This document shows positions 6,028-35,000 of a stretch of 64,000 nucleotides of DNA, in pieces. Numbering within the stretch: position 1 is the first letter of the stretch; each line of letters starts with the position of its first letter. The position numbers were made by a program, and so were the translations under genes. The notes under the pieces were generated by a model. It was not told where the DNA came from. It was given only the letters and a program-made list of their open reading frames with translations, and ran no database searches. This DNA comes from Auanema rhodensis (taxonomy: Eukaryota > Animalia > Nematoda): positions 18,104,001 through 18,168,000 of the forward strand of contig OZ059896.1 in assembly GCA_964057225.1 (NCBI GenBank), written 5' to 3'.

Positions 6028-6203
6028 GCGAAGAAATGGCTAAGGAAATTACAATTCAATTTATTCAAGTTTTTAAAATATAAATATTATATCTTTTTAA
6101 CAAAACTATAACTTTTATTTAACTTATACACATGAAAAACACAAATTCTTTTTCTTTTTTTCCCTCTTTCAATTCCAAAATATTTTCTTTTTTTCAGTTA
6201 AAT

Positions 6204-7644
6204 ATGGTTTATAAACCACTTATCATCACTATTCTAAATTTTCTCTGGTTGTTTTCAACTACACATGGGGCACCAGCATTCTCTGAAGAACATGGTGGAT
6301 CTAGTTTGAGAAGTCTAGGAATGATTTCATCGGGAAGTATAAACTCAGCAGGAGATTTAAAAGGCTCCACTAACCTAAGCAGTTCAAGAGGATTTCTTGG
6401 TTCAGGACGACCATCAGGACTCGGAGGTGGCGCTTTAGAAGGCGGCATCAAGTCCACAAATGCAGGTGGAGCTGGCTTAGGACGACCATCAGGGCTCGGA
6501 GGTGGCGCTTTAGAAGGCGGCATCAAGTCCACAAATGCAGGAGGAGCTGGCTTAGGACGACCATCAGCACTCGGAGGTGGCGCTTTAGAAGGTGGCATCA
6601 AGTCCACAAATGCAGGAGGAGCTGGCTTAGGACGACCATCAGGACTCGGAGGTGGCGCTTTAGAAGGGGGCATCAAGTCCACAAGTGCAGGTGGAGCTGG
6701 CTTAGAACGACCATCAGGACTCGGAGGTGGCGCTTTAGAAGGGGGCATCAAGTCCACAAATGCAGGAAGAGCTGGCTTAGAACGACCATCAGGACTCGAA
6801 GGTGGCGCTTTGGAAGGCGGCATGGGAAAGTCAACTAACATGGAAAGAACTCGTTTAGAACGTTCAGCAGTGCTCGGTACTGATACTTCAGAAGGTGATA
6901 TGAATAGATCAATCAATTCAGGAAGCACAGACGATTCTATAAACGAAGGAAACCTTGACTTAAGTATTGGCTCTATTGCACCAGTTAGCATTACAGATTC
7001 TATCGAAGAAAAAGATATGGATGGATTAGACATCTTAGCACCATCATTGGCAGGCCTTACTGGTTCTGGTATTTCGATCGGAATTCTAGGTCTTCCGATT
7101 CGTATTCAAGATATTCCATTCCTTCGCGATATGTCAGAACTAGCAATCAAATCATTCTCAGATATCATAACAACAAAAAATTCTTCAATTAGAGAAAGAT
7201 ATCAACAAATTCGTGATTGGGCAAATCAGTATGGTATTAGTCCAGTTGTAGATACCTATTTTGCTCAGCACACAGCTCAAACTCAACAACATCTTCGGAA
7301 AGCCTACAAGACTTTTAGCCTTTCACCAGATTCAATCCAACAAATCAACAATATTCTAAGCAACTTAGATCAAACACCTGATCATACAAAGTCGGATTTA
7401 TCTGAGCTTTCAAAAACAGATCCAAAAGTAAGATAATTAGTATTATGAAATCAAAATTAAAATTAATCTATTTCCTTTTCAGGTTGGTAAAGTTATAGGA
7501 TATTTGCTTAATGCAAGATCCAAAATGAATTCTAAGAATGGTGCTCACAATAAGATGTTCAAAGGTAATAAGCGAATGAGAGGAATGAGCCCACAAGGAC
7601 GTAAAGGAAATTTGCGTGATCATAGTAGAGAAGATATGGCTTGA
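6204..7644 (+). CDS. Secreted SXP/RAL-2 (DUF148/ANIS5)-like protein with N-terminal Gly-rich 25-aa repeats, 461 aa, 2 exons
   Basis: ATG 6204 follows TTTTCAG. Signal peptide MVYKPLIITILNFLWLFSTTHG|AP. Exons 6204-7427 and 7483-7644. Family motif IPFLRDMSELAIKSFSDI...IRDWANQYGI...ILSNLDQT...DPK. Confidence 0.85.
6405..6920 (+). repeat. Coding 75-bp tandem repeat (GRPSGLGGGALEGGIKSTNAGGAGL)
   Basis: Units start at 6405, 6480, 6555, 6630, 6705 and 6780. Five are near-identical, followed by progressively degenerate ones. Confidence 0.95.
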
Positions 7645-7940: not shown

Positions 7941-8509
7941 TTAGAACTTTCCTTGGAATTTCTTCTTCTGTTCTTCACTGATTACTATTTCTTGGAAAAT
8001 TGCTGACTTGGGTAGAGTTTGAACTTTAGATAAAACAATTTGAATAATTTCAAAAGCCTATAAATATATATAATTAGTGGTTATGCAATACTTATAAAAC
8101 ATACTCTTGGATACTTGATGTATAAATCTAGAAGATGGCTCTGCATTTCAGCTATATCCTCATATTGATTCTCAATTCGTAGCATTTCTTCGAACACTTT
8201 TGGTACTTGTTTGAAAAAATTCATAACGTCTTCATTTTGTCCTCTCATTAAATTGACAACTCTATCATGTGCAACTTGAAATTCTTTGGTTATATTATGC
8301 TTTTCAGCAAATAACATGATTTTCTTTTCTTTCTCTTCGTTGTTCATGTTATGTTCTTGTAAAGTTTGAGATATTTCTTGAATATCTTGTTTAGACAAGT
8401 TGGAAACGATATGTTGAATCTCATCAGCAAAGAAATCATCAAATCCTTTAAGAGGAGCACAAGAAATAGTCGAGACAAAAATGAAGAAAGATATATACTT
8501 TAACATCAT
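7941..8509 (-). CDS. Secreted SXP/RAL-2 (DUF148)-like protein, 173 aa, 2 exons
   Basis: Exons 8105-8509 and 7941-8057. Signal peptide ends ...TISC|AP. Motif NLSKQDIQEI...IMLFAEKHNI...KYPR. Phase-0 intron after the P-x motif, as in the paralogues. Confidence 0.8.
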
Positions 8510-9212: not shown

Positions 9213-9347
9213 TTTTTAATATTAATTATTAGTTGTATATAGTTTGATGATACAGTATCAGAATTATTATTTTATTTAAAGATACTATCTATACTGATTA
9301 AAATAAAATAATTGACTCTAGTTTCGTAAGCCCCGCCCCTTTTGACA
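9213..9347. repeat. 135-bp direct repeat, copy 1
   Basis: Identical by eye to 12181-12315 (TTTTTAATATTAATTATTAG...GCCCCGCCCCTTTTGACA). Confidence 0.9.
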
Positions 9348-9827
9348 TTTTTTTTCTCGTTTTTCGTTATGGATGTAACGCATATGCGCCACGTCCTTCT
9401 TTCTCATTTTGAAAGTGGTGTTTCTGCTCATGAAGCTCACCGAAACGTTGTTGCACGACAACGCGCGCCCTCACTGTTGTGCGAAGGCACAGCAAACGCT
9501 CCAGGAGCTGAATTGGGAAGTTTTGAAGCATCCCCCTTACTCTCCAGATCTTGCCCCAACATATTATCATCTTATCATCTGTTCAGGTCAATGGAGCATA
9601 GTTTGAGAGGGGAAAGCTTCAAAAATTTAGGAGAAGTTGAACAATTCATTAAAAAATTTTTCGAGTCTAAATCTAAAATATTTTTCAGAAATGGAATAAG
9701 AAATTTGAAGAAGAGATGGGAGAAAGTGATCGAAAGCGAGGGACAATATTTTCAGAAATAAATTCTTTTCTTTTATAACAGTTTTTTTGATTTTTTTGAC
9801 ATGACACACTAACTTACACACCTAATA
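9348..9827 (+). mobile_element. Internally deleted mariner (Tc1/mariner) element
   Basis: The N-terminal MDVTHMRHVLLSHFESGVSAHEAHRN is fused out of frame to LLHDNARPH...WEVLKHPPYSPDLAP and FRSMEHSL...GIRNLKKRWEKVIESEGQYF. An 8-bp duplication TTATCATC causes a frameshift. The 3' TIR-like end is ...CACACCTAA-TA. The 5' TIR is missing, and the 135-bp repeat abuts that end. Confidence 0.9.
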
Positions 9828-10927: not shown

Positions 10928-11434
10928 TTACGAGACAGTCGATCCTTTTGCAATTAAAATTGCTGGAATACTTACTGGTGCGGTCAATATTGCTAGAGCA
11001 GCCTGATTGCTAATACTCTTTCCGTACCTACACCAATTGGCAAAATGTTCACAGTTATTGGTTAAGGTATTGTATTTGAACGATCCAAGTTTGTTCTTTG
11101 CCCTCCTAACTATTTCTTCGGCGGAATATGGTTTAAAACTGCTATCCAGACTGTTACAGATTCTAACATCGTTATTGTCAGCATAATCTGAAACCCGCTG
11201 TCTAATAGCTTTATCCTCATTAGTCACATGAATCATGTAATCATCTTCTCCGTCGAATTCCACAATTATACCTCAATGCTAAAATATCAAAGTAAAGTTT
11301 ACAACTATATTTAAACAAATACTTACATGGTAGAAAAAGTTGATTTCAATTTCGACACGGCTTCCAATTAATTCTTTCGTCGGAAAAATATCAGTTAATT
11401 GATGAGCTTCACAGTAATTTGAAAGTAAGACCAT
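10928..11434 (-). pseudogene. LRAT/PLAAT-like gene with in-frame TGA next to the catalytic His
   Basis: Exons 11327-11434 and 10928-11278 (48-nt intron) read ...FFYH|H*GIIVEFDGEDDYMIH...YNTLTNNCEHFANWCRYGKSISNQ. The TGA at 11273-11275 sits where TGG (HWG) is expected. The rest of the frame is intact. Confidence 0.75.
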
Positions 11435-29024: not shown

Positions 29025-32000
29025 TCATCTCATTTGATGTGGTATTGCATAGCTTGAAACTAAAAATAAAATTATTTGTTCTGTTAAAAACATTTGGAAA
29101 AAAAAAAGTTAAAACCTTACCTGATGAGCTGCTTACACGCCGTGTTACACCTGGAGTAGTATAGCTATTATTTGAAGAATCTGTGTATCCTGATGAATCT
29201 ATAAGAAAATTTTCTTTTTTTAATTAATTTTCAATTTGTTTTTGTAATTGATTTTTTCAAAAAAAAACTGCTGAATCTGACATCTAAACGTTCAAAAATA
29301 TTTTCTTTTAAATTTCTTTTCATTTTTTTGTTTAAAATTTCTTTTTTAAAATTGTATATATATATATACATATATACATATATCTTTGACTCTTATTTTC
29401 AAGAAAACTTGAAAACATACATGTTGTACCACTCATTGAGCTTGAACATACGGATCCACGATCAATAGAACGAATACATCTGAAAGAATTAAGAATTCTT
29501 CTATATTTCACATCTCTAGCATCATTAACGACAACTGACGAGAAGAAAAACCTTATATGTATGAGATAGGTTGATATGAAAATTGAAAAGATGAGTAGAA
29601 TTGCTGTACCCGCCCCTGCAATTGCAATTTGCCATCGTAAGAAACACATTGTGTCTTCAGAAACAACAGATGATGACATGAAGAATTCTGTAAAAATCTT
29701 ATGAACTTCTTTTCAAAAAAATTTTTTTTTCTTTGATCAATCGTTGATTAAAATTTCTTTTTAAATCTTTTTTCATCATAAATTTCAAAAGAATATAATT
29801 TGATCTTTTCAAAAATGTTCAATTGTTCTTCAAATTTTGTCATAAAATGTCCTTCTTTTCTTTGAACTTCATTTCAAATTACCATCTAAAGATTATTATC
29901 TTTCAAAATCTTACCCGGACGAGGTTTGCGTGGTTTTAACTTTTTCATGGGCGTTTCAACATTTTCAATAAACTTGGATGATTTTGTATCTTCTGGATCT
30001 AATACAGTTAGAGTTCCAGTCACAAAACTATGTTTTTCATTTTTTATTTTAATTTCTTCTTCTTCTTCATAATTTGTCTGAAATATTTTGAAAAATTAAA
30101 TTTTAAAAAAATCTTCTTTTTTCTTCTTCAATGTTTAATATTATTTGAAAAATAAATTAGAAAACTGTACTTCTTGCTGAGCATGAAGTCGAAAATCTGG
30201 TCTTAACCGACTCATCAATTGCTGAAGATCTTCTATTGATTGTCGTTTCTTACGTCCATGACTATTTCCACTTTTATGTGTTAAACCATCACATATAACC
30301 TAAAGAAATAATATAAATAAATTATTTTTTTTATTAAAAATTCATATCAGAATCTTTAAATATCAAATTTGATTATAAGATAACTAGCTAGTAAAACATG
30401 TCATTTCAATCTTCTTTTTTTTAATTTTTATATATTTTTTTTTAAATTAGAAACTTTTTTATATTTAAATTTAGACTATGACTACATTTTCATATAAAAA
30501 TTGTGTGATTATACCAAAACTCGCTCTTATTGGTGGTGATGTAGTTGATGATGTGGCTATTTTTATTAATGATCAAGGTACTATACAAGATATTAAGAAG
30601 GCTTCAACTGGAAATTTTGTAAATCAAACTGTTGTACAGCTTCCGGATGAAGTAATAAAGTTTATTTATAAATTATAGTTAATATAGTTAATGTTTTAGA
30701 TTCTTTTACCCGGCTTTATAAATGCTCATTCACATGCTTTTCATCGACATCTTCGTGGTCGAAGTGAAATTGGTGGAAAAGCTGCTGATACATTTTGGAA
30801 ATGGAGAGATAACATGTATGGATTAGTAGATGGAGTTACAAAAGAAATGCTTTATGAGGTTAGATTTGTACTTTGAATTTGAAATTTTTCAAAAAAGGAA
30901 TAGACAGATGAGCTTTATCTCATTTCAGTATTGTCGTGTAACATTTTTGGAAATGTTATCTGCAGGAATTACAACTGTCGGTGAATTTCATTATGTTCAT
31001 CATTCAGCTGATGGACGTTTTGATTTGGATTCAGTTGTTATTCAAGCTGCACAAGATGTTGGAATACGTTTAACCTTAATTCAAGTAATAATCTTTTTCA
31101 TATTTATCTTATACAAAAAAATTAAAATTTTGAAGACTTTGTATGAACGAGCTGGATTCGATAATGGTATAATACATCCAGTTCAAAATAATTTCTTTTC
31201 AAGTTATGAAGAATTCATGACAAATATGAATAAACTAATGAGAATTCATAATTCTGATACAGTTTCAATAGCTGTTGCTGGTTAGTGTTTTTCAATATGA
31301 AATATACAAAAGTAAATTCATCTTTCAGCTCATTCAACAAGAGGAGTCTGTTTCGAAAATATCGCAAAACTATATGAATATTCAAAGAAGAATGGCCTAG
31401 CTTTTCATATTCATCTAGAAGAACAACCAAAAGAAATACAAGATTGTCTTAAGTATACTCAGCTTAAAAAGGCTTGTTTTACTGATTTAGTGAAACATAC
31501 ATCATTCAAATAGGATCAAAAGTAAATGTCTGTTTCAGAGTCCATCTGATATTCTATTTGATTTACTTGATATTGGAAATAATTTCACTTCAGTTCATTC
31601 AACTTATACGTCTCCACCAAATATGAAACGATTTGCTCAACAAAGAGCTAATGTTTGTATTTGTCCATTGACTGAAGGTTTGAAAACATAGATTGATAAA
31701 TTCAAAACAAAATTTTAAAATTTAGGTTATTTGGGTGATGGAATACCTTTTGTACCTCCAAACTTAGATATTTCATTGGGAACAGATTGTAATAATCGTA
31801 TATGTTTCTTGGAAGAGATGAGATGGGCTTGTTACTCTCAACATGTAATATCTCTTTAATGCAATTTTCATACAAAGAATTTGTGTGATTCAGATGAAAA
31901 TGAATAGCCGAAGCGTAGCTGGATTATCAGCTCAAAGACTTGTGGAAGCTGCAACAATTGGTGGAGCCCGATCATTATGCTTAGAGCATAAAGTTGGAAC

Positions 32001-35000
32001 ACTTGAGGTAAATATCAAAGACAAGACGATATAATAATAAGCTTATTGGCATTCATAATAGGTTGGCAAGCAGTTTGATTGTGTGTCATTCGAATTATCG
32101 ACATGTGCTTTGAAAAATTGTCAAGAAACCCAAGAAATATTGGATTCACTTGTATTTGGATGCGGAAATCGTGAAATAAAACGAGTAATTGTAAATGGAA
32201 TCAATAGATATATTAATTAAAATAATATTTTTGTATCTTTTCTTTTCTTTTAAATTGTTATCATTATCATATAATATATATGAAGTTTGAAAATAGCGGC
32301 GGAAAAAAGAAAAAAAAGGTCTTACGTGGAAAAGACGTCATTTCTTCATTTATTGACATCAAAATCGGTTGTTTTAAGGACATAAGACATAAGGTGATAG
32401 GTATGATTGACTATTTGTATTTATCTATGAAAAGGGGGGGGGGGGTTGTACGACTGAATAGGGGGGTGAAAGATAAATCAAATGATTCTTTCTTATCATT
32501 CTCATCATACCACGTGTGAGCTTTTGATTTAAATTGTACGAAATAGATGATATTTCTCTTTTTAAGAAAAAAACAATTTTTCATTTTATTCTTACTTATA
32601 AATCATGATAAGTCAAGAATAAGAAGACGAATACGCAATAGGTTTCAAACATATTTCTTTAATTTTTCAAGTTATAAGGAGTTTCAAGTTTTTTTAATAA
32701 TAAAACTTAAATCTTTTTTTTTTGTTTTTTTCTTTCTTTAAGAACTTACCGGTTCACAACGATCAATACAAACATCGATAGTACACTTGATACGAACTCG
32801 ACGACTACCATCAAAACGAAAAACCTATAAATCATATTATTACTGCCTATAGTCTTAATAAGTTTAATTTAAGTTTAAAATATATGATATAGTTAAGTAT
32901 AAATAAGGTTCATAATTTTATTGCTTACTTTTAAGCGTGTAGAGTACGACTGATCAATATCTGAATCAACAACAGCATCTAATAATCTATTTTTTACTTT
33001 TTCTTCTGGACATCTGAAAAAAAGTTTAAATTTTTTATTATATACGTGAAATTTGTTTTTATAAATAAGAAAATATTTTAAAAACAAACCCTTGATGAAT
33101 TATTTTCAAAGGTTCAGGTTGGGGTTCAGAACCTCCTACTCTTTCAGCAACACATTCATTTATGAAGAAGCCTAAGCCTTCTTCTGGATTTAAAACTAAA
33201 GAAATAAAATAACATTCAAAGAATATAGATTGTAATCTAACCTGTCCAACGAAGCTCAACAACTTCACCTAATGGTACAATTGTCACAGGTTTACCACTT
33301 CGTAAAATTTCCATTTTAATTTTTTCAGATCGAGTTTCTTCTCGATCATTATTGGAAGATTTTTTTTCATCGTATTGTGGACGTAAGCTGAAAAGGTTTT
33401 TAAACATTTTTGTAAAAAAGTAAAAAGAGAGAGAGAGAGAGAGAGAAAGATATTTACCCTATACTATTAGTTTTTTCAATTAATTCTGTATAATCACATG
33501 TTATATTGAATACACGATCAGTTGATGTTAGAAGTAATGGTGATTCCATATCATTCCGTTGAACAACAACCATGAATGACCAATGAGATGGGCTCTATAG
33601 GTATTAGAATCTCAGTTACTGTACTTATGGATGACAAACCAGCTCAATGCCAGGACATCTCGGATCATTCTCATCACTATTAGGAAATGGAATATGTAAC
33701 GTTGATTTGGTTGTATTTTCAAATTCTGCTCGACATGTTGAAAAATGGTCCTAAACAGATTGTTTTTGCATATAACAGGTTGAAGAAGTGCGATACCTTA
33801 ATGAACATCGTGCCTGTTGTAGGATTTCCAAATTCAACTGAAACTGATATGCCTGACATTCTACATTCCGTTAAAAGTTCTGTAATTATAATAATTCATA
33901 TAGTTAACAGCAAATTATTGTCTAAAACTTACTTGCTTTAGTAGAATTTTCTGCTCGTTCATGAAAATCATTGTCATCATCAATTACAGTTTCTTCAGCT
34001 TGAGCTTGAACTTGGGACACCCTTTCTCCAACTTCATCATGATTCTAAACAGAATGATAGTACACTTAAGCTTATGCGATCATTTTTGATGTTACCTCTT
34101 GAATTATTTCATTATTTTCCTTTTCATCTACAAATTTTTGATTTGGTGCAGCTTGTGCAATAGGCTTATCAGTACTTGTAACCCGTATTTCATCTGGTGG
34201 AATAGGTATTGAATCACAAATCTAAAATTTAAAAACATTGAAAACAATTAGAAATTTTCCTATATCACTTTATCAAAATAATCCGAATTTTTATCAAATT
34301 TAAACGCATCCGGCTTTGAAAACTGTGAATATTCTGATAAATGACATGTATCCTGAAAATATAAACTTGAAATATTCCTTGTATTCGGGAACTGTACAGA
34401 AATTTTGAAGAAAGAAAGCATTTTGTTCTCGAAATAATGTCTTTTCACCTCTTGTTCGTATACAAATTCTTGAATTTAATTATACTTACATATCAAAGTT
34501 GTATTAACTAGTCAAATTCTCTGAACCACTTTATCCTTTTGACACAATAGGTAAAGATTCTAGTTTTAAGAAATAGAGAGAGAGAGACAGAGAGAAAGAG
34601 AGAAAAAGAGAGAGATAGAGAGAGAGAGAGAGGAACGGAGGAGACGAGGAATATCTTTACTTTCTCTTACATACAGTAATTGGAGGAAGAAGATGAATCG
34701 AAATGACAGCGAAATTTACTCGAAAAGGAAAAGTTGTCCTATATGTGAATAAGGAAGGGAAAGGTAGATTGACCTTTACCTCATAGTTAACTACTAATAC
34801 AAGTGAATTTCTTTTCACTTTCTCTATTATTTTCAATTAAGAAATATTTTATGGTTTTCTTATAAATCATCAATTGTTTCTTTTATTTGAAAATTTAAAA
34901 TAAACAAAAATTTAAAAATATATTAAACATACACTATTATAATCATAACTAATTGATGCACAATTAGCTCCTTCATCAATACATGAAGATAAACAATGAT

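Follow-up and report, generated by a model that had tools for sequence, protein, structure and literature searches.

The window analysed here, a 64,000-nucleotide stretch of the nematode Auanema rhodensis (contig OZ059896.1, positions 18,104,001 to 18,168,000, forward strand), raises the question of which reaction is catalyzed by the product of an intron-bearing amidohydrolase gene at 30478–32220, and of how an enzyme that a preliminary description of this DNA took for a bacterial route of histidine catabolism came to reside in a nematode genome. The gene is this species' ortholog of Caenorhabditis elegans cpin-1 and encodes an intact, expressed-looking, single-domain amidohydrolase of the HutF (formimidoylglutamate deiminase) family, and we consider it likely that this enzyme hydrolyzes N-formimino-L-glutamate (FIGLU) to N-formyl-L-glutamate and ammonia. 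The finding is confirmatory, because the concept has appeared before, both in work on C. elegans metabolism and in a published list of horizontal gene transfers (HGT).

Direct reading of the window and a script check yielded a complete protein-coding gene of nine exons on the plus strand. The ATG is located at 30478 and the TAA stop at 32218–32220, and the coding sequence of 1326 nt comprises 441 codons and the stop. The eight introns, which measure 48, 70, 51, 48, 49, 48, 49 and 54 nt in order, all begin with GT and end with AG, and the acceptors of five of them match the nematode (T/A)TTCAG pattern. The GC content is 33% in the exons versus 22% in the introns, and intron 3 (51 nt) reads in frame with exons 3 and 4. 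The preliminary description had reported a complete nine-exon amidohydrolase with a set of family motifs and short introns of the host type, and both statements are borne out by the gene model, in which every one of these motifs is located in exons 2–7. A TTTAG that lies 3 nt before the ATG could serve as a trans-splice acceptor. An AT-rich stretch (30409–30451) lies just 5' of the gene.

Membership in the HutF family was judged against the NCBIfam models TIGR02022 and NF006680–NF006684 (EC 3.5.3.13), with searches run exon by exon or with database orthologs. HutF models were the top NCBIfam match for exons 2, 3, 5, 6, 7 and 9, and the matched profile positions are colinear, while Pfam recognises only the generic Amidohydro_1 (PF01979). 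Exon 1 (30478–30651; 58 codons, phase 0) carries the start ATG and encodes the N-terminal β-sandwich portion of the amidohydrolase; alone, it has no family match in NCBIfam or Pfam, and it pairs with residues 2–50 of the Auanema ortholog P0173. Exon 2 (30700–30858; 53 codons) contains the HxH metal ligands within HSHAFHR and the arginine of FWKWRD (FWKWRDNMY), and matches TIGR02022 hutF (E = 1.1e-17, profile positions 49–98) and PDB entry 3mdu (E = 3.9e-10). In exon 3 (30929–31084; 52 codons), which encodes GEFHYVHH with the substrate-site tyrosine, the match is to NF006681 (E = 2.7e-16, profile positions ~102–156) and again to 3mdu (E = 1.9e-07), the leading PDB match of both exons. The variable region encoded by exon 4 (31136–31280; 48 codons plus 1 nt, ending in phase 1) has no family match in NCBIfam when searched alone, and pairs with residues 154–201 of P0173 and with residues 155–202 of C. 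elegans CPIN-1 (P0266).

The second half of the gene continues this colinear series. Exon 5 (31329–31489) encodes AHSTRG, with its His and Arg, and HIHLEEQPKEIQDC, with a metal-binding His and the catalytic Glu, and matches HutF models at E = 5e-07 (profile positions ~207–249). Exon 6 (31539–31677; 46 codons plus 1 nt, ending in phase 1) carries VHSTY, with the catalytic His, and CPLTE, and matches TIGR02022 at E = 7.5e-07 (profile positions 253–297). The TE|GYLGDG motif spans the junction of exons 6 and 7, so that exon 7 (31726–31844) begins with (G)YLGDG, followed by GTDC, with the metal-binding Asp, and EEMRW; alone, exon 7 is weak (NF006684, E = 0.17, profile positions 300–340), and it is alignable to the orthologs. 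Exon 8 (31894–32007; 38 codons) encodes a generic C-terminal barrel segment of the amidohydrolase and matches Pfam Amidohydro_1 (E = 1e-04), its remaining matches being generic models of the TRZ/ATZ type. Finally, exon 9 (32062–32220; 52 codons and the TAA stop) matches HutF models at E = 0.003–0.02 (profile positions ~383–430). The HutF match is far beyond chance, because single exons reach E values of 1e-17, 3e-16, 5e-07 and 8e-07 at colinear profile positions.

One detail of the model concerns the end of exon 5, where 18 nt (31472–31489) encode ACFTDL, six residues that are absent from every ortholog compared. The donor used in our model is the GT at 31490; with an alternative GC donor at 31472, the length of the orthologs would be matched exactly. 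The segment may be either a lineage-specific loop insert or intronic sequence behind a true exon 5 donor at 31472.

The separation of HutF from other amidohydrolase families is broad. The window exons together reach about 189 bits on TIGR02022 as a sum, and eight full-length nematode orthologs score 268–342 bits with TIGR02022 and 301–343 bits with NF006681; the next family reaches at most about 133 bits with the same eight proteins, so that the HutF score is 2.5–3 times that of its nearest competitor. Among the solved structures in the PDB, C. elegans CPIN-1 matches Pseudomonas aeruginosa HutF (3mdu) with 190 bits, 4f0r with 75 bits and guanine deaminases with about 40 bits. Judged from these profile and structure-database scores, the closest family is HutF, by a wide margin over guanine deaminase and S-adenosylhomocysteine/5'-methylthioadenosine (MTA/SAH) deaminase, in line with the HutF-like identity proposed in the preliminary description.

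Both of these other identities are nevertheless in circulation. A guanine deaminase ('cypin homolog') or an MTA/SAH deaminase, the name under which the gene is recorded in Toxocara and Ascaris, would share the amidohydrolase superfamily fold (PF01979), and the names themselves stand in public records. Against this, the nematode proteins score only about 75–84 bits with the guanine deaminase model TIGR02967, which has a cut-off of 375, and 87–120 bits with the 5'-deoxyadenosine deaminase model NF005557, which has a cut-off of 522. With both scores far under the family cut-offs, the two identities were rejected, and we regard them as very improbable. Furthermore, the guanine deaminase activity of C. 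elegans has been assigned to gda-1 and gda-2, which are unrelated genes of the cytidine deaminase fold (2026 preprint, 10.64898/2026.04.09.715363). This assignment leaves no rationale for the name 'cypin', which is a historical mislabel of cpin-1.

The active site supports the same family assignment. Residues are numbered here as in 3mdu, on the basis of an alignment of CPIN-1 with that structure. The equivalents of the metal ligands H56, H58, H232 and D320 and of the catalytic residues E235 and H269 are all encoded in the window exons, and these six positions are constant in 62 aligned sequences, bar single exceptions outside the nematodes. The equivalents of R82, Y121 and R209 are also present in the window exons and are invariant in 10/10 nematode sequences, and the H206 equivalent is likewise invariant. 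The encoded protein is predicted to possess a mononuclear-metal site that is intact, together with its catalytic Glu and His. The roles of these residues, and those of Q61, R82, Y121 and R209 in the substrate pocket of HutF, reportedly go back to work by Marti-Arbona and Raushel in 2006 and by Fedorov and colleagues in 2015.

Comparison with other nematodes identified the gene as the ortholog of cpin-1. Aligned exon by exon, the window gene is colinear with its counterparts and shows 69.8% identity to Auanema sp. JU1783, 61.6% to C. elegans cpin-1 and 60.8% to Haemonchus, as compared to 53–54% to Pristionchus and Toxocara and 44–48% to protist and bacterial proteins. The C. elegans protein (P0266, NP_501669.1) is recorded as 'CyPIN (guanine aminohydrolase) homolog', that is, cpin-1 (F38E11.3, UniProt Q20166); the suspicion in the preliminary description that the gene might already exist in other nematodes under a cypin-like label was thus correct. 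A word search of a collection of 5.8 billion proteins did not retrieve the window species' own protein. The distribution of the family was traced by an exhaustive profile-free search with the stretch from exon 3 to exon 4, including the in-frame intron 3, followed by word searches with the full-length matches. The family was found across Rhabditida, in Caenorhabditis, Pristionchus, Auanema, Mesorhabditis, strongylids, Panagrolaimus, Strongyloides, Steinernema, Bursaphelenchus, Aphelenchoides, Ditylenchus, Meloidogyne, Globodera, Toxocara, Ascaris and Syphacia.

For four genes, those of C. elegans, Pristionchus, Toxocara and Ditylenchus, the exons were mapped exactly to the genomic loci, and the introns were placed on one alignment. 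All eight window introns agree in column and phase with introns of at least one of these four genes. Five are common to Toxocara, Ditylenchus and Pristionchus, and three of these five also occur in C. elegans; one is matched by Pristionchus alone and two by C. elegans alone. Given that positions and phases are shared, the gene already carried introns in the common ancestor of these nematode clades, and is neither a recent arrival nor a contaminant. The intron record marks it as an ancient resident of nematode genomes. The notion that the locus reflects contamination, a pseudogene or a chance pattern of open reading frames (ORFs) is scarcely credible in the face of eight spliceosomal introns at positions common to other nematodes, a frame that is open through nine exons and intact catalytic residues. 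In addition, the surrounding window is nematode DNA and contains four SXP/RAL-2 genes, ORFs that carry the domain PF02520. Contamination and a pseudogene were rejected on these grounds, and recent HGT on that of the shared introns.

The genomic setting of cpin-1 has a peculiarity in other nematodes, where it is nested within the span of a large opposite-strand gene in C. elegans, Pristionchus and Toxocara (L001:4250-11999, L003:1-9008 and L004:1-11469, respectively). The host gene differs among them, being let-653-like in C. elegans, a spectrin/CH-domain giant in Pristionchus and an ankyrin/death-domain gene in Toxocara.

In the preferred reading, the substrate would be FIGLU, and the predicted hydrolysis to N-formyl-L-glutamate and ammonia would constitute the fourth step of histidine breakdown, following histidine ammonia-lyase, urocanase and imidazolonepropionase. 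The step would need no tetrahydrofolate, and the N-formylglutamate would then be deformylated by a separate enzyme. Expression data from C. elegans are consistent with this placement. The steps from histidine to N-formyl-L-glutamate have been attributed to four genes, haly-1, Y51H4A.7 (uroc-1), amdh-1 and cpin-1, which form a top-ranked co-expression cluster (Walhout lab, 10.1101/2022.11.08.515576). T12A2.1, considered as a HutF-like gene of C. elegans, was rejected, as it is amdh-1, the imidazolonepropionase.

Several observations weigh against the assignment of the gene to FIGLU hydrolysis, or temper it. The family scores come from single exons and from orthologs, rather than from the joined 441-residue protein, and the nematode orthologs remain under the NCBI equivalog cut-offs of 413 bits (TIGR02022) and 362 bits (NF006681), whereas their nearest bacterial relatives exceed the latter with 402 and 422 bits. 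The Gln of HSHAFQR is replaced by His in the window (HSHAFHR) and in 9/10 nematode sequences, and this Gln61 reportedly belongs to the substrate pocket in the work on 3MDU. A literature search found no enzyme assay and no mutant metabolite phenotype for any nematode member, and we know of no downstream deformylase in nematodes. Transcription and splicing in A. rhodensis are only hinted at by short-word counts: four runs of one study contain 0.51–0.52 of the 31-mers sampled from 30400–32300, a fraction near the 0.56 that spliced exons alone would give.

These points could be accommodated by an enzyme with the same fold and chemistry but a diverged substrate, namely a deaminase or deiminase that arose from HutF but now uses a different formimino, guanidino or purine-like compound. 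Besides the scores under the equivalog cut-offs, such a change would fit the nematode-specific states near the pocket, where Q61 is replaced by His and the A-N of TEANLGDG by G-Y/F, giving TEG(Y/F)LGDG (a third nematode-specific state is Cys for Ser321), and the long branch to the nematode clade, at 0.44–0.57 changes per column. However, sub-cut-off scores are to be expected, because the models were built from bacterial sequences and the nematodes represent a eukaryotic branch. Moreover, the other residues attributed to the HutF pocket, R82, Y121, R209 and H206, are invariant, and cpin-1 is tightly co-expressed in C. elegans with the three upstream genes of histidine degradation (10.1101/2022.11.08.515576). 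We therefore regard a diverged substrate as unlikely, and retain FIGLU as the probable substrate.

How the enzyme reached the nematodes is a separate question. The predicted pathway role and the foreign-looking origin of cpin-1 have both been published. In the survey of Crisp et al. 2015 (PMC4358723, additional file 3), cpin-1/F38E11.3 is listed as 'class A HGT' and 'Validated', with an h index of 165.3; its best match is a protist protein, G4ZN95 of Phytophthora, with 250 bits, as compared to 219 bits for the best bacterium and only 84.7 bits for the best metazoan match, so that no animal beyond the nematodes showed a close relative in that survey. The points added here are the spread of the family among protists, including fusions, and the placement of the nematode clade among those eukaryotes and bacteria.

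Two unrooted trees were calculated from HutF sequences only, one with FastTree (136 rows) and the other with IQ-TREE under the posterior mean site frequency (PMSF) model (62 rows). The nematodes are monophyletic (support 100), and their internal order is close to that of the species. P0125 (support 92–94) is placed as their sister; it is a fusion of HutF with an M20 domain from a metagenome contig (L086) that also encodes an aspartyl protease of the pepsin type, a family found mainly in eukaryotes. The nematodes and P0125 fall within a 99%-supported group together with protist fusions and bacteria of the Planctomycetota and Gemmatimonadota types, and the backbone within this group is without resolution. 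HutFs of the Pseudomonadota, Actinomycetota and Acidobacteriaceae types are placed outside the group. The state GTDC, with Cys following the metal-binding Asp, occurs in 10/10 nematode and 15/18 protist or unplaced sequences, but in only 1/34 bacterial ones.

If an early nematode had received the gene directly from a bacterium of the Planctomycetota, Gemmatimonadota or Acidobacteriota type, independently of the protist copies, this would account for the position of the nematodes inside the 99%-supported group that holds such bacteria, and for the nearest labelled prokaryotic relatives, which are Planctomycetota, Gemmatimonadota and Thermoanaerobaculia at 37–42% identity. It sits less well with the fusion protein as sister on a contig with a mainly eukaryotic protease family, with the distribution of GTDC and with the protist as best match of cpin-1. 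In addition, a tree in which all 28 non-bacterial rows form one clade was not rejected (log-likelihood difference 7.1; approximately unbiased (AU) test, p = 0.29). We consider such a direct transfer possible but rather doubtful, and the data lean slightly toward a eukaryote-affiliated source of the nematode gene, as in Crisp et al. The gene would have reached the nematodes by ancient transfer, or would have descended from a eukaryotic HutF lineage that was lost in other animals; transfer and loss are indistinguishable in these trees, because they lack an outgroup. The preliminary description had framed the gene as old and either horizontally acquired or widely lost, and this framing agrees with the shared introns and with the position of the nematodes among bacterial and protist HutFs. 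Its 'bacterial route', on the other hand, is too narrow, because several protist lineages also carry the enzyme.

The protist proteins also bear on the step that follows FIGLU hydrolysis. Fusions with an N-terminal HutF and a C-terminal M20 domain were found in Sphaeroforma arctica, many oomycetes, Perkinsus and Amoebophrya (P0055, P0284-P0302), and those of the oomycetes Phytophthora and Pythium are named formiminoglutamate deiminase in UniProt. A second arrangement, in which an N-terminal peptide deformylase precedes a C-terminal HutF, occurs in Paraphysomonas and other protist transcriptomes (P0317, P0327, P0340, P0256, P0337). The domain order of the fusions was checked by local hidden Markov model (HMM) searches and NCBIfam; the M20 partners are of the ArgE/DapE deacylase family, and the peptide deformylase domain of the second arrangement is bona fide. 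These proteins are evidence that the family, which occurs in ichthyosporeans, oomycetes and alveolates, extends over several eukaryotic supergroups. A comparable association exists in bacteria, where four of the seven loci whose flanks were scanned have an ArgE-type M20 deacylase gene (TIGR01892, 290–343 bits) immediately 5' of hutF and in the same orientation (L008:1267-2565, L011:4688-5938, L016:4546-5670 and L017:1604-2737). By Rosetta-stone logic, fusions and neighborhoods fit a HutF that makes N-formylglutamate, which is then deformylated by the partner enzymes, and the bacterial ArgE-type M20 deacylase is a candidate N-formylglutamate deformylase in place of HutG.

The nematode proteins are single-domain and carry neither an M20 nor a deformylase partner. 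A tblastn search of the 64-kb window with M20 domains gave no match, and an Atlas look-up gave no nematode cluster. Tentatively, cpin-1 may stem not from a direct bacterial transfer but from a eukaryotic HutF lineage whose members elsewhere carry a fused ArgE-type M20 deacylase or peptide deformylase; these eukaryotes, among them the nematodes, would then convert FIGLU by way of N-formylglutamate to glutamate and formate without folate, the second step falling to an ArgE- or deformylase-type enzyme and not to the classical HutG. If this is true, candidate enzymes can be named for the last step in worms. The fusions and gene neighborhoods, which point to ArgE-type or deformylase-type enzymes for the N-formylglutamate step, are a modest lead in this respect.

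The correct name of the gene is formimidoylglutamate deiminase-like, or cpin-1, and many nematode records mislabel it as cypin/guanine deaminase, MTA/SAH deaminase or a generic amidohydrolase. The NCBI records of Teladorsagia, Dictyocaulus and Ostertagia already read 'putative formimidoylglutamate deiminase'. Elsewhere, the public names of the Toxocara and Ascaris orthologs, 5-methylthioadenosine/S-adenosylhomocysteine deaminase, look wrong, as does the annotation of an Aphelenchoides besseyi model (1265 aa) that joins cpin-1 to a long, apparently unrelated C-terminal region (P0007, P0160, P0208). As for physiology, FIGLU is probably removed by hydrolysis in rhabditid nematodes, with no need for tetrahydrofolate, in contrast to vertebrates, and this bears on how histidine–folate interactions in worm models are interpreted. 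In principle, the enzyme may also provide a parasite-specific metabolic step, since mammals lack it.

The rest of the window contains further recognizable features. The four ORFs with an SXP/RAL-2 (Ani s 5-like) domain are located at 6132–7436 (+), 8081–8509 (−), 14264–14752 (−) and 16582–17076 (−), the first of them with a long N-terminal array of Gly-rich repeats (GLGGGALEGGIKSTNAGGAGLGRPS). A fragment of a Mos1-type transposase helix-turn-helix domain lies at 9342–9761, and two LRAT-domain ORFs lie at 10928–11263 (−) and 11622–12128 (+).

Among known systems, the window gene is closest to C. elegans CPIN-1, its ortholog, with which it shares the catalytic motifs and five of its eight introns in position and phase. 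The C. elegans gene differs in having six introns rather than eight, and the window protein may have a six-residue insert ahead of exon 6. P. aeruginosa HutF (N-formimino-L-glutamate iminohydrolase; 3MDU, 3MDW, 4RDV) agrees with the window protein in family and fold and is the best match among solved structures; the two share their metal-binding residues (HxH, H and D), the E and H of catalysis, and R82, Y121 and R209. However, it belongs to a distant HutF group across the 99%-supported split, and the nematodes have replaced its Gln61, the A-N of TEANLGDG and Ser321 as described above; moreover, the bacterial gene is part of a hut operon that also encodes HutG, whereas the nematode gene occurs by itself. 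The eukaryotic HutF–M20 and deformylase–HutF fusions fall in the same well-supported subgroup, share GTDC and show 44–48% identity to the window exons, but they consist of two domains. Human GDA (guanine deaminase/cypin, PDB 2UZ9) has in common the amidohydrolase superfamily and the HxH metal site, and is distant from CPIN-1 in both the structure comparison (40 vs 190 bits for HutF) and the profile comparison (75 bits vs a cut-off of 375). Vertebrate FTCD (formimidoyltransferase-cyclodeaminase) acts on FIGLU at the same point of histidine catabolism, but its fold and chemistry are unrelated to those of HutF: FTCD passes the formimino group on to tetrahydrofolate, whereas the HutF reaction is a cofactor-free hydrolysis of FIGLU.

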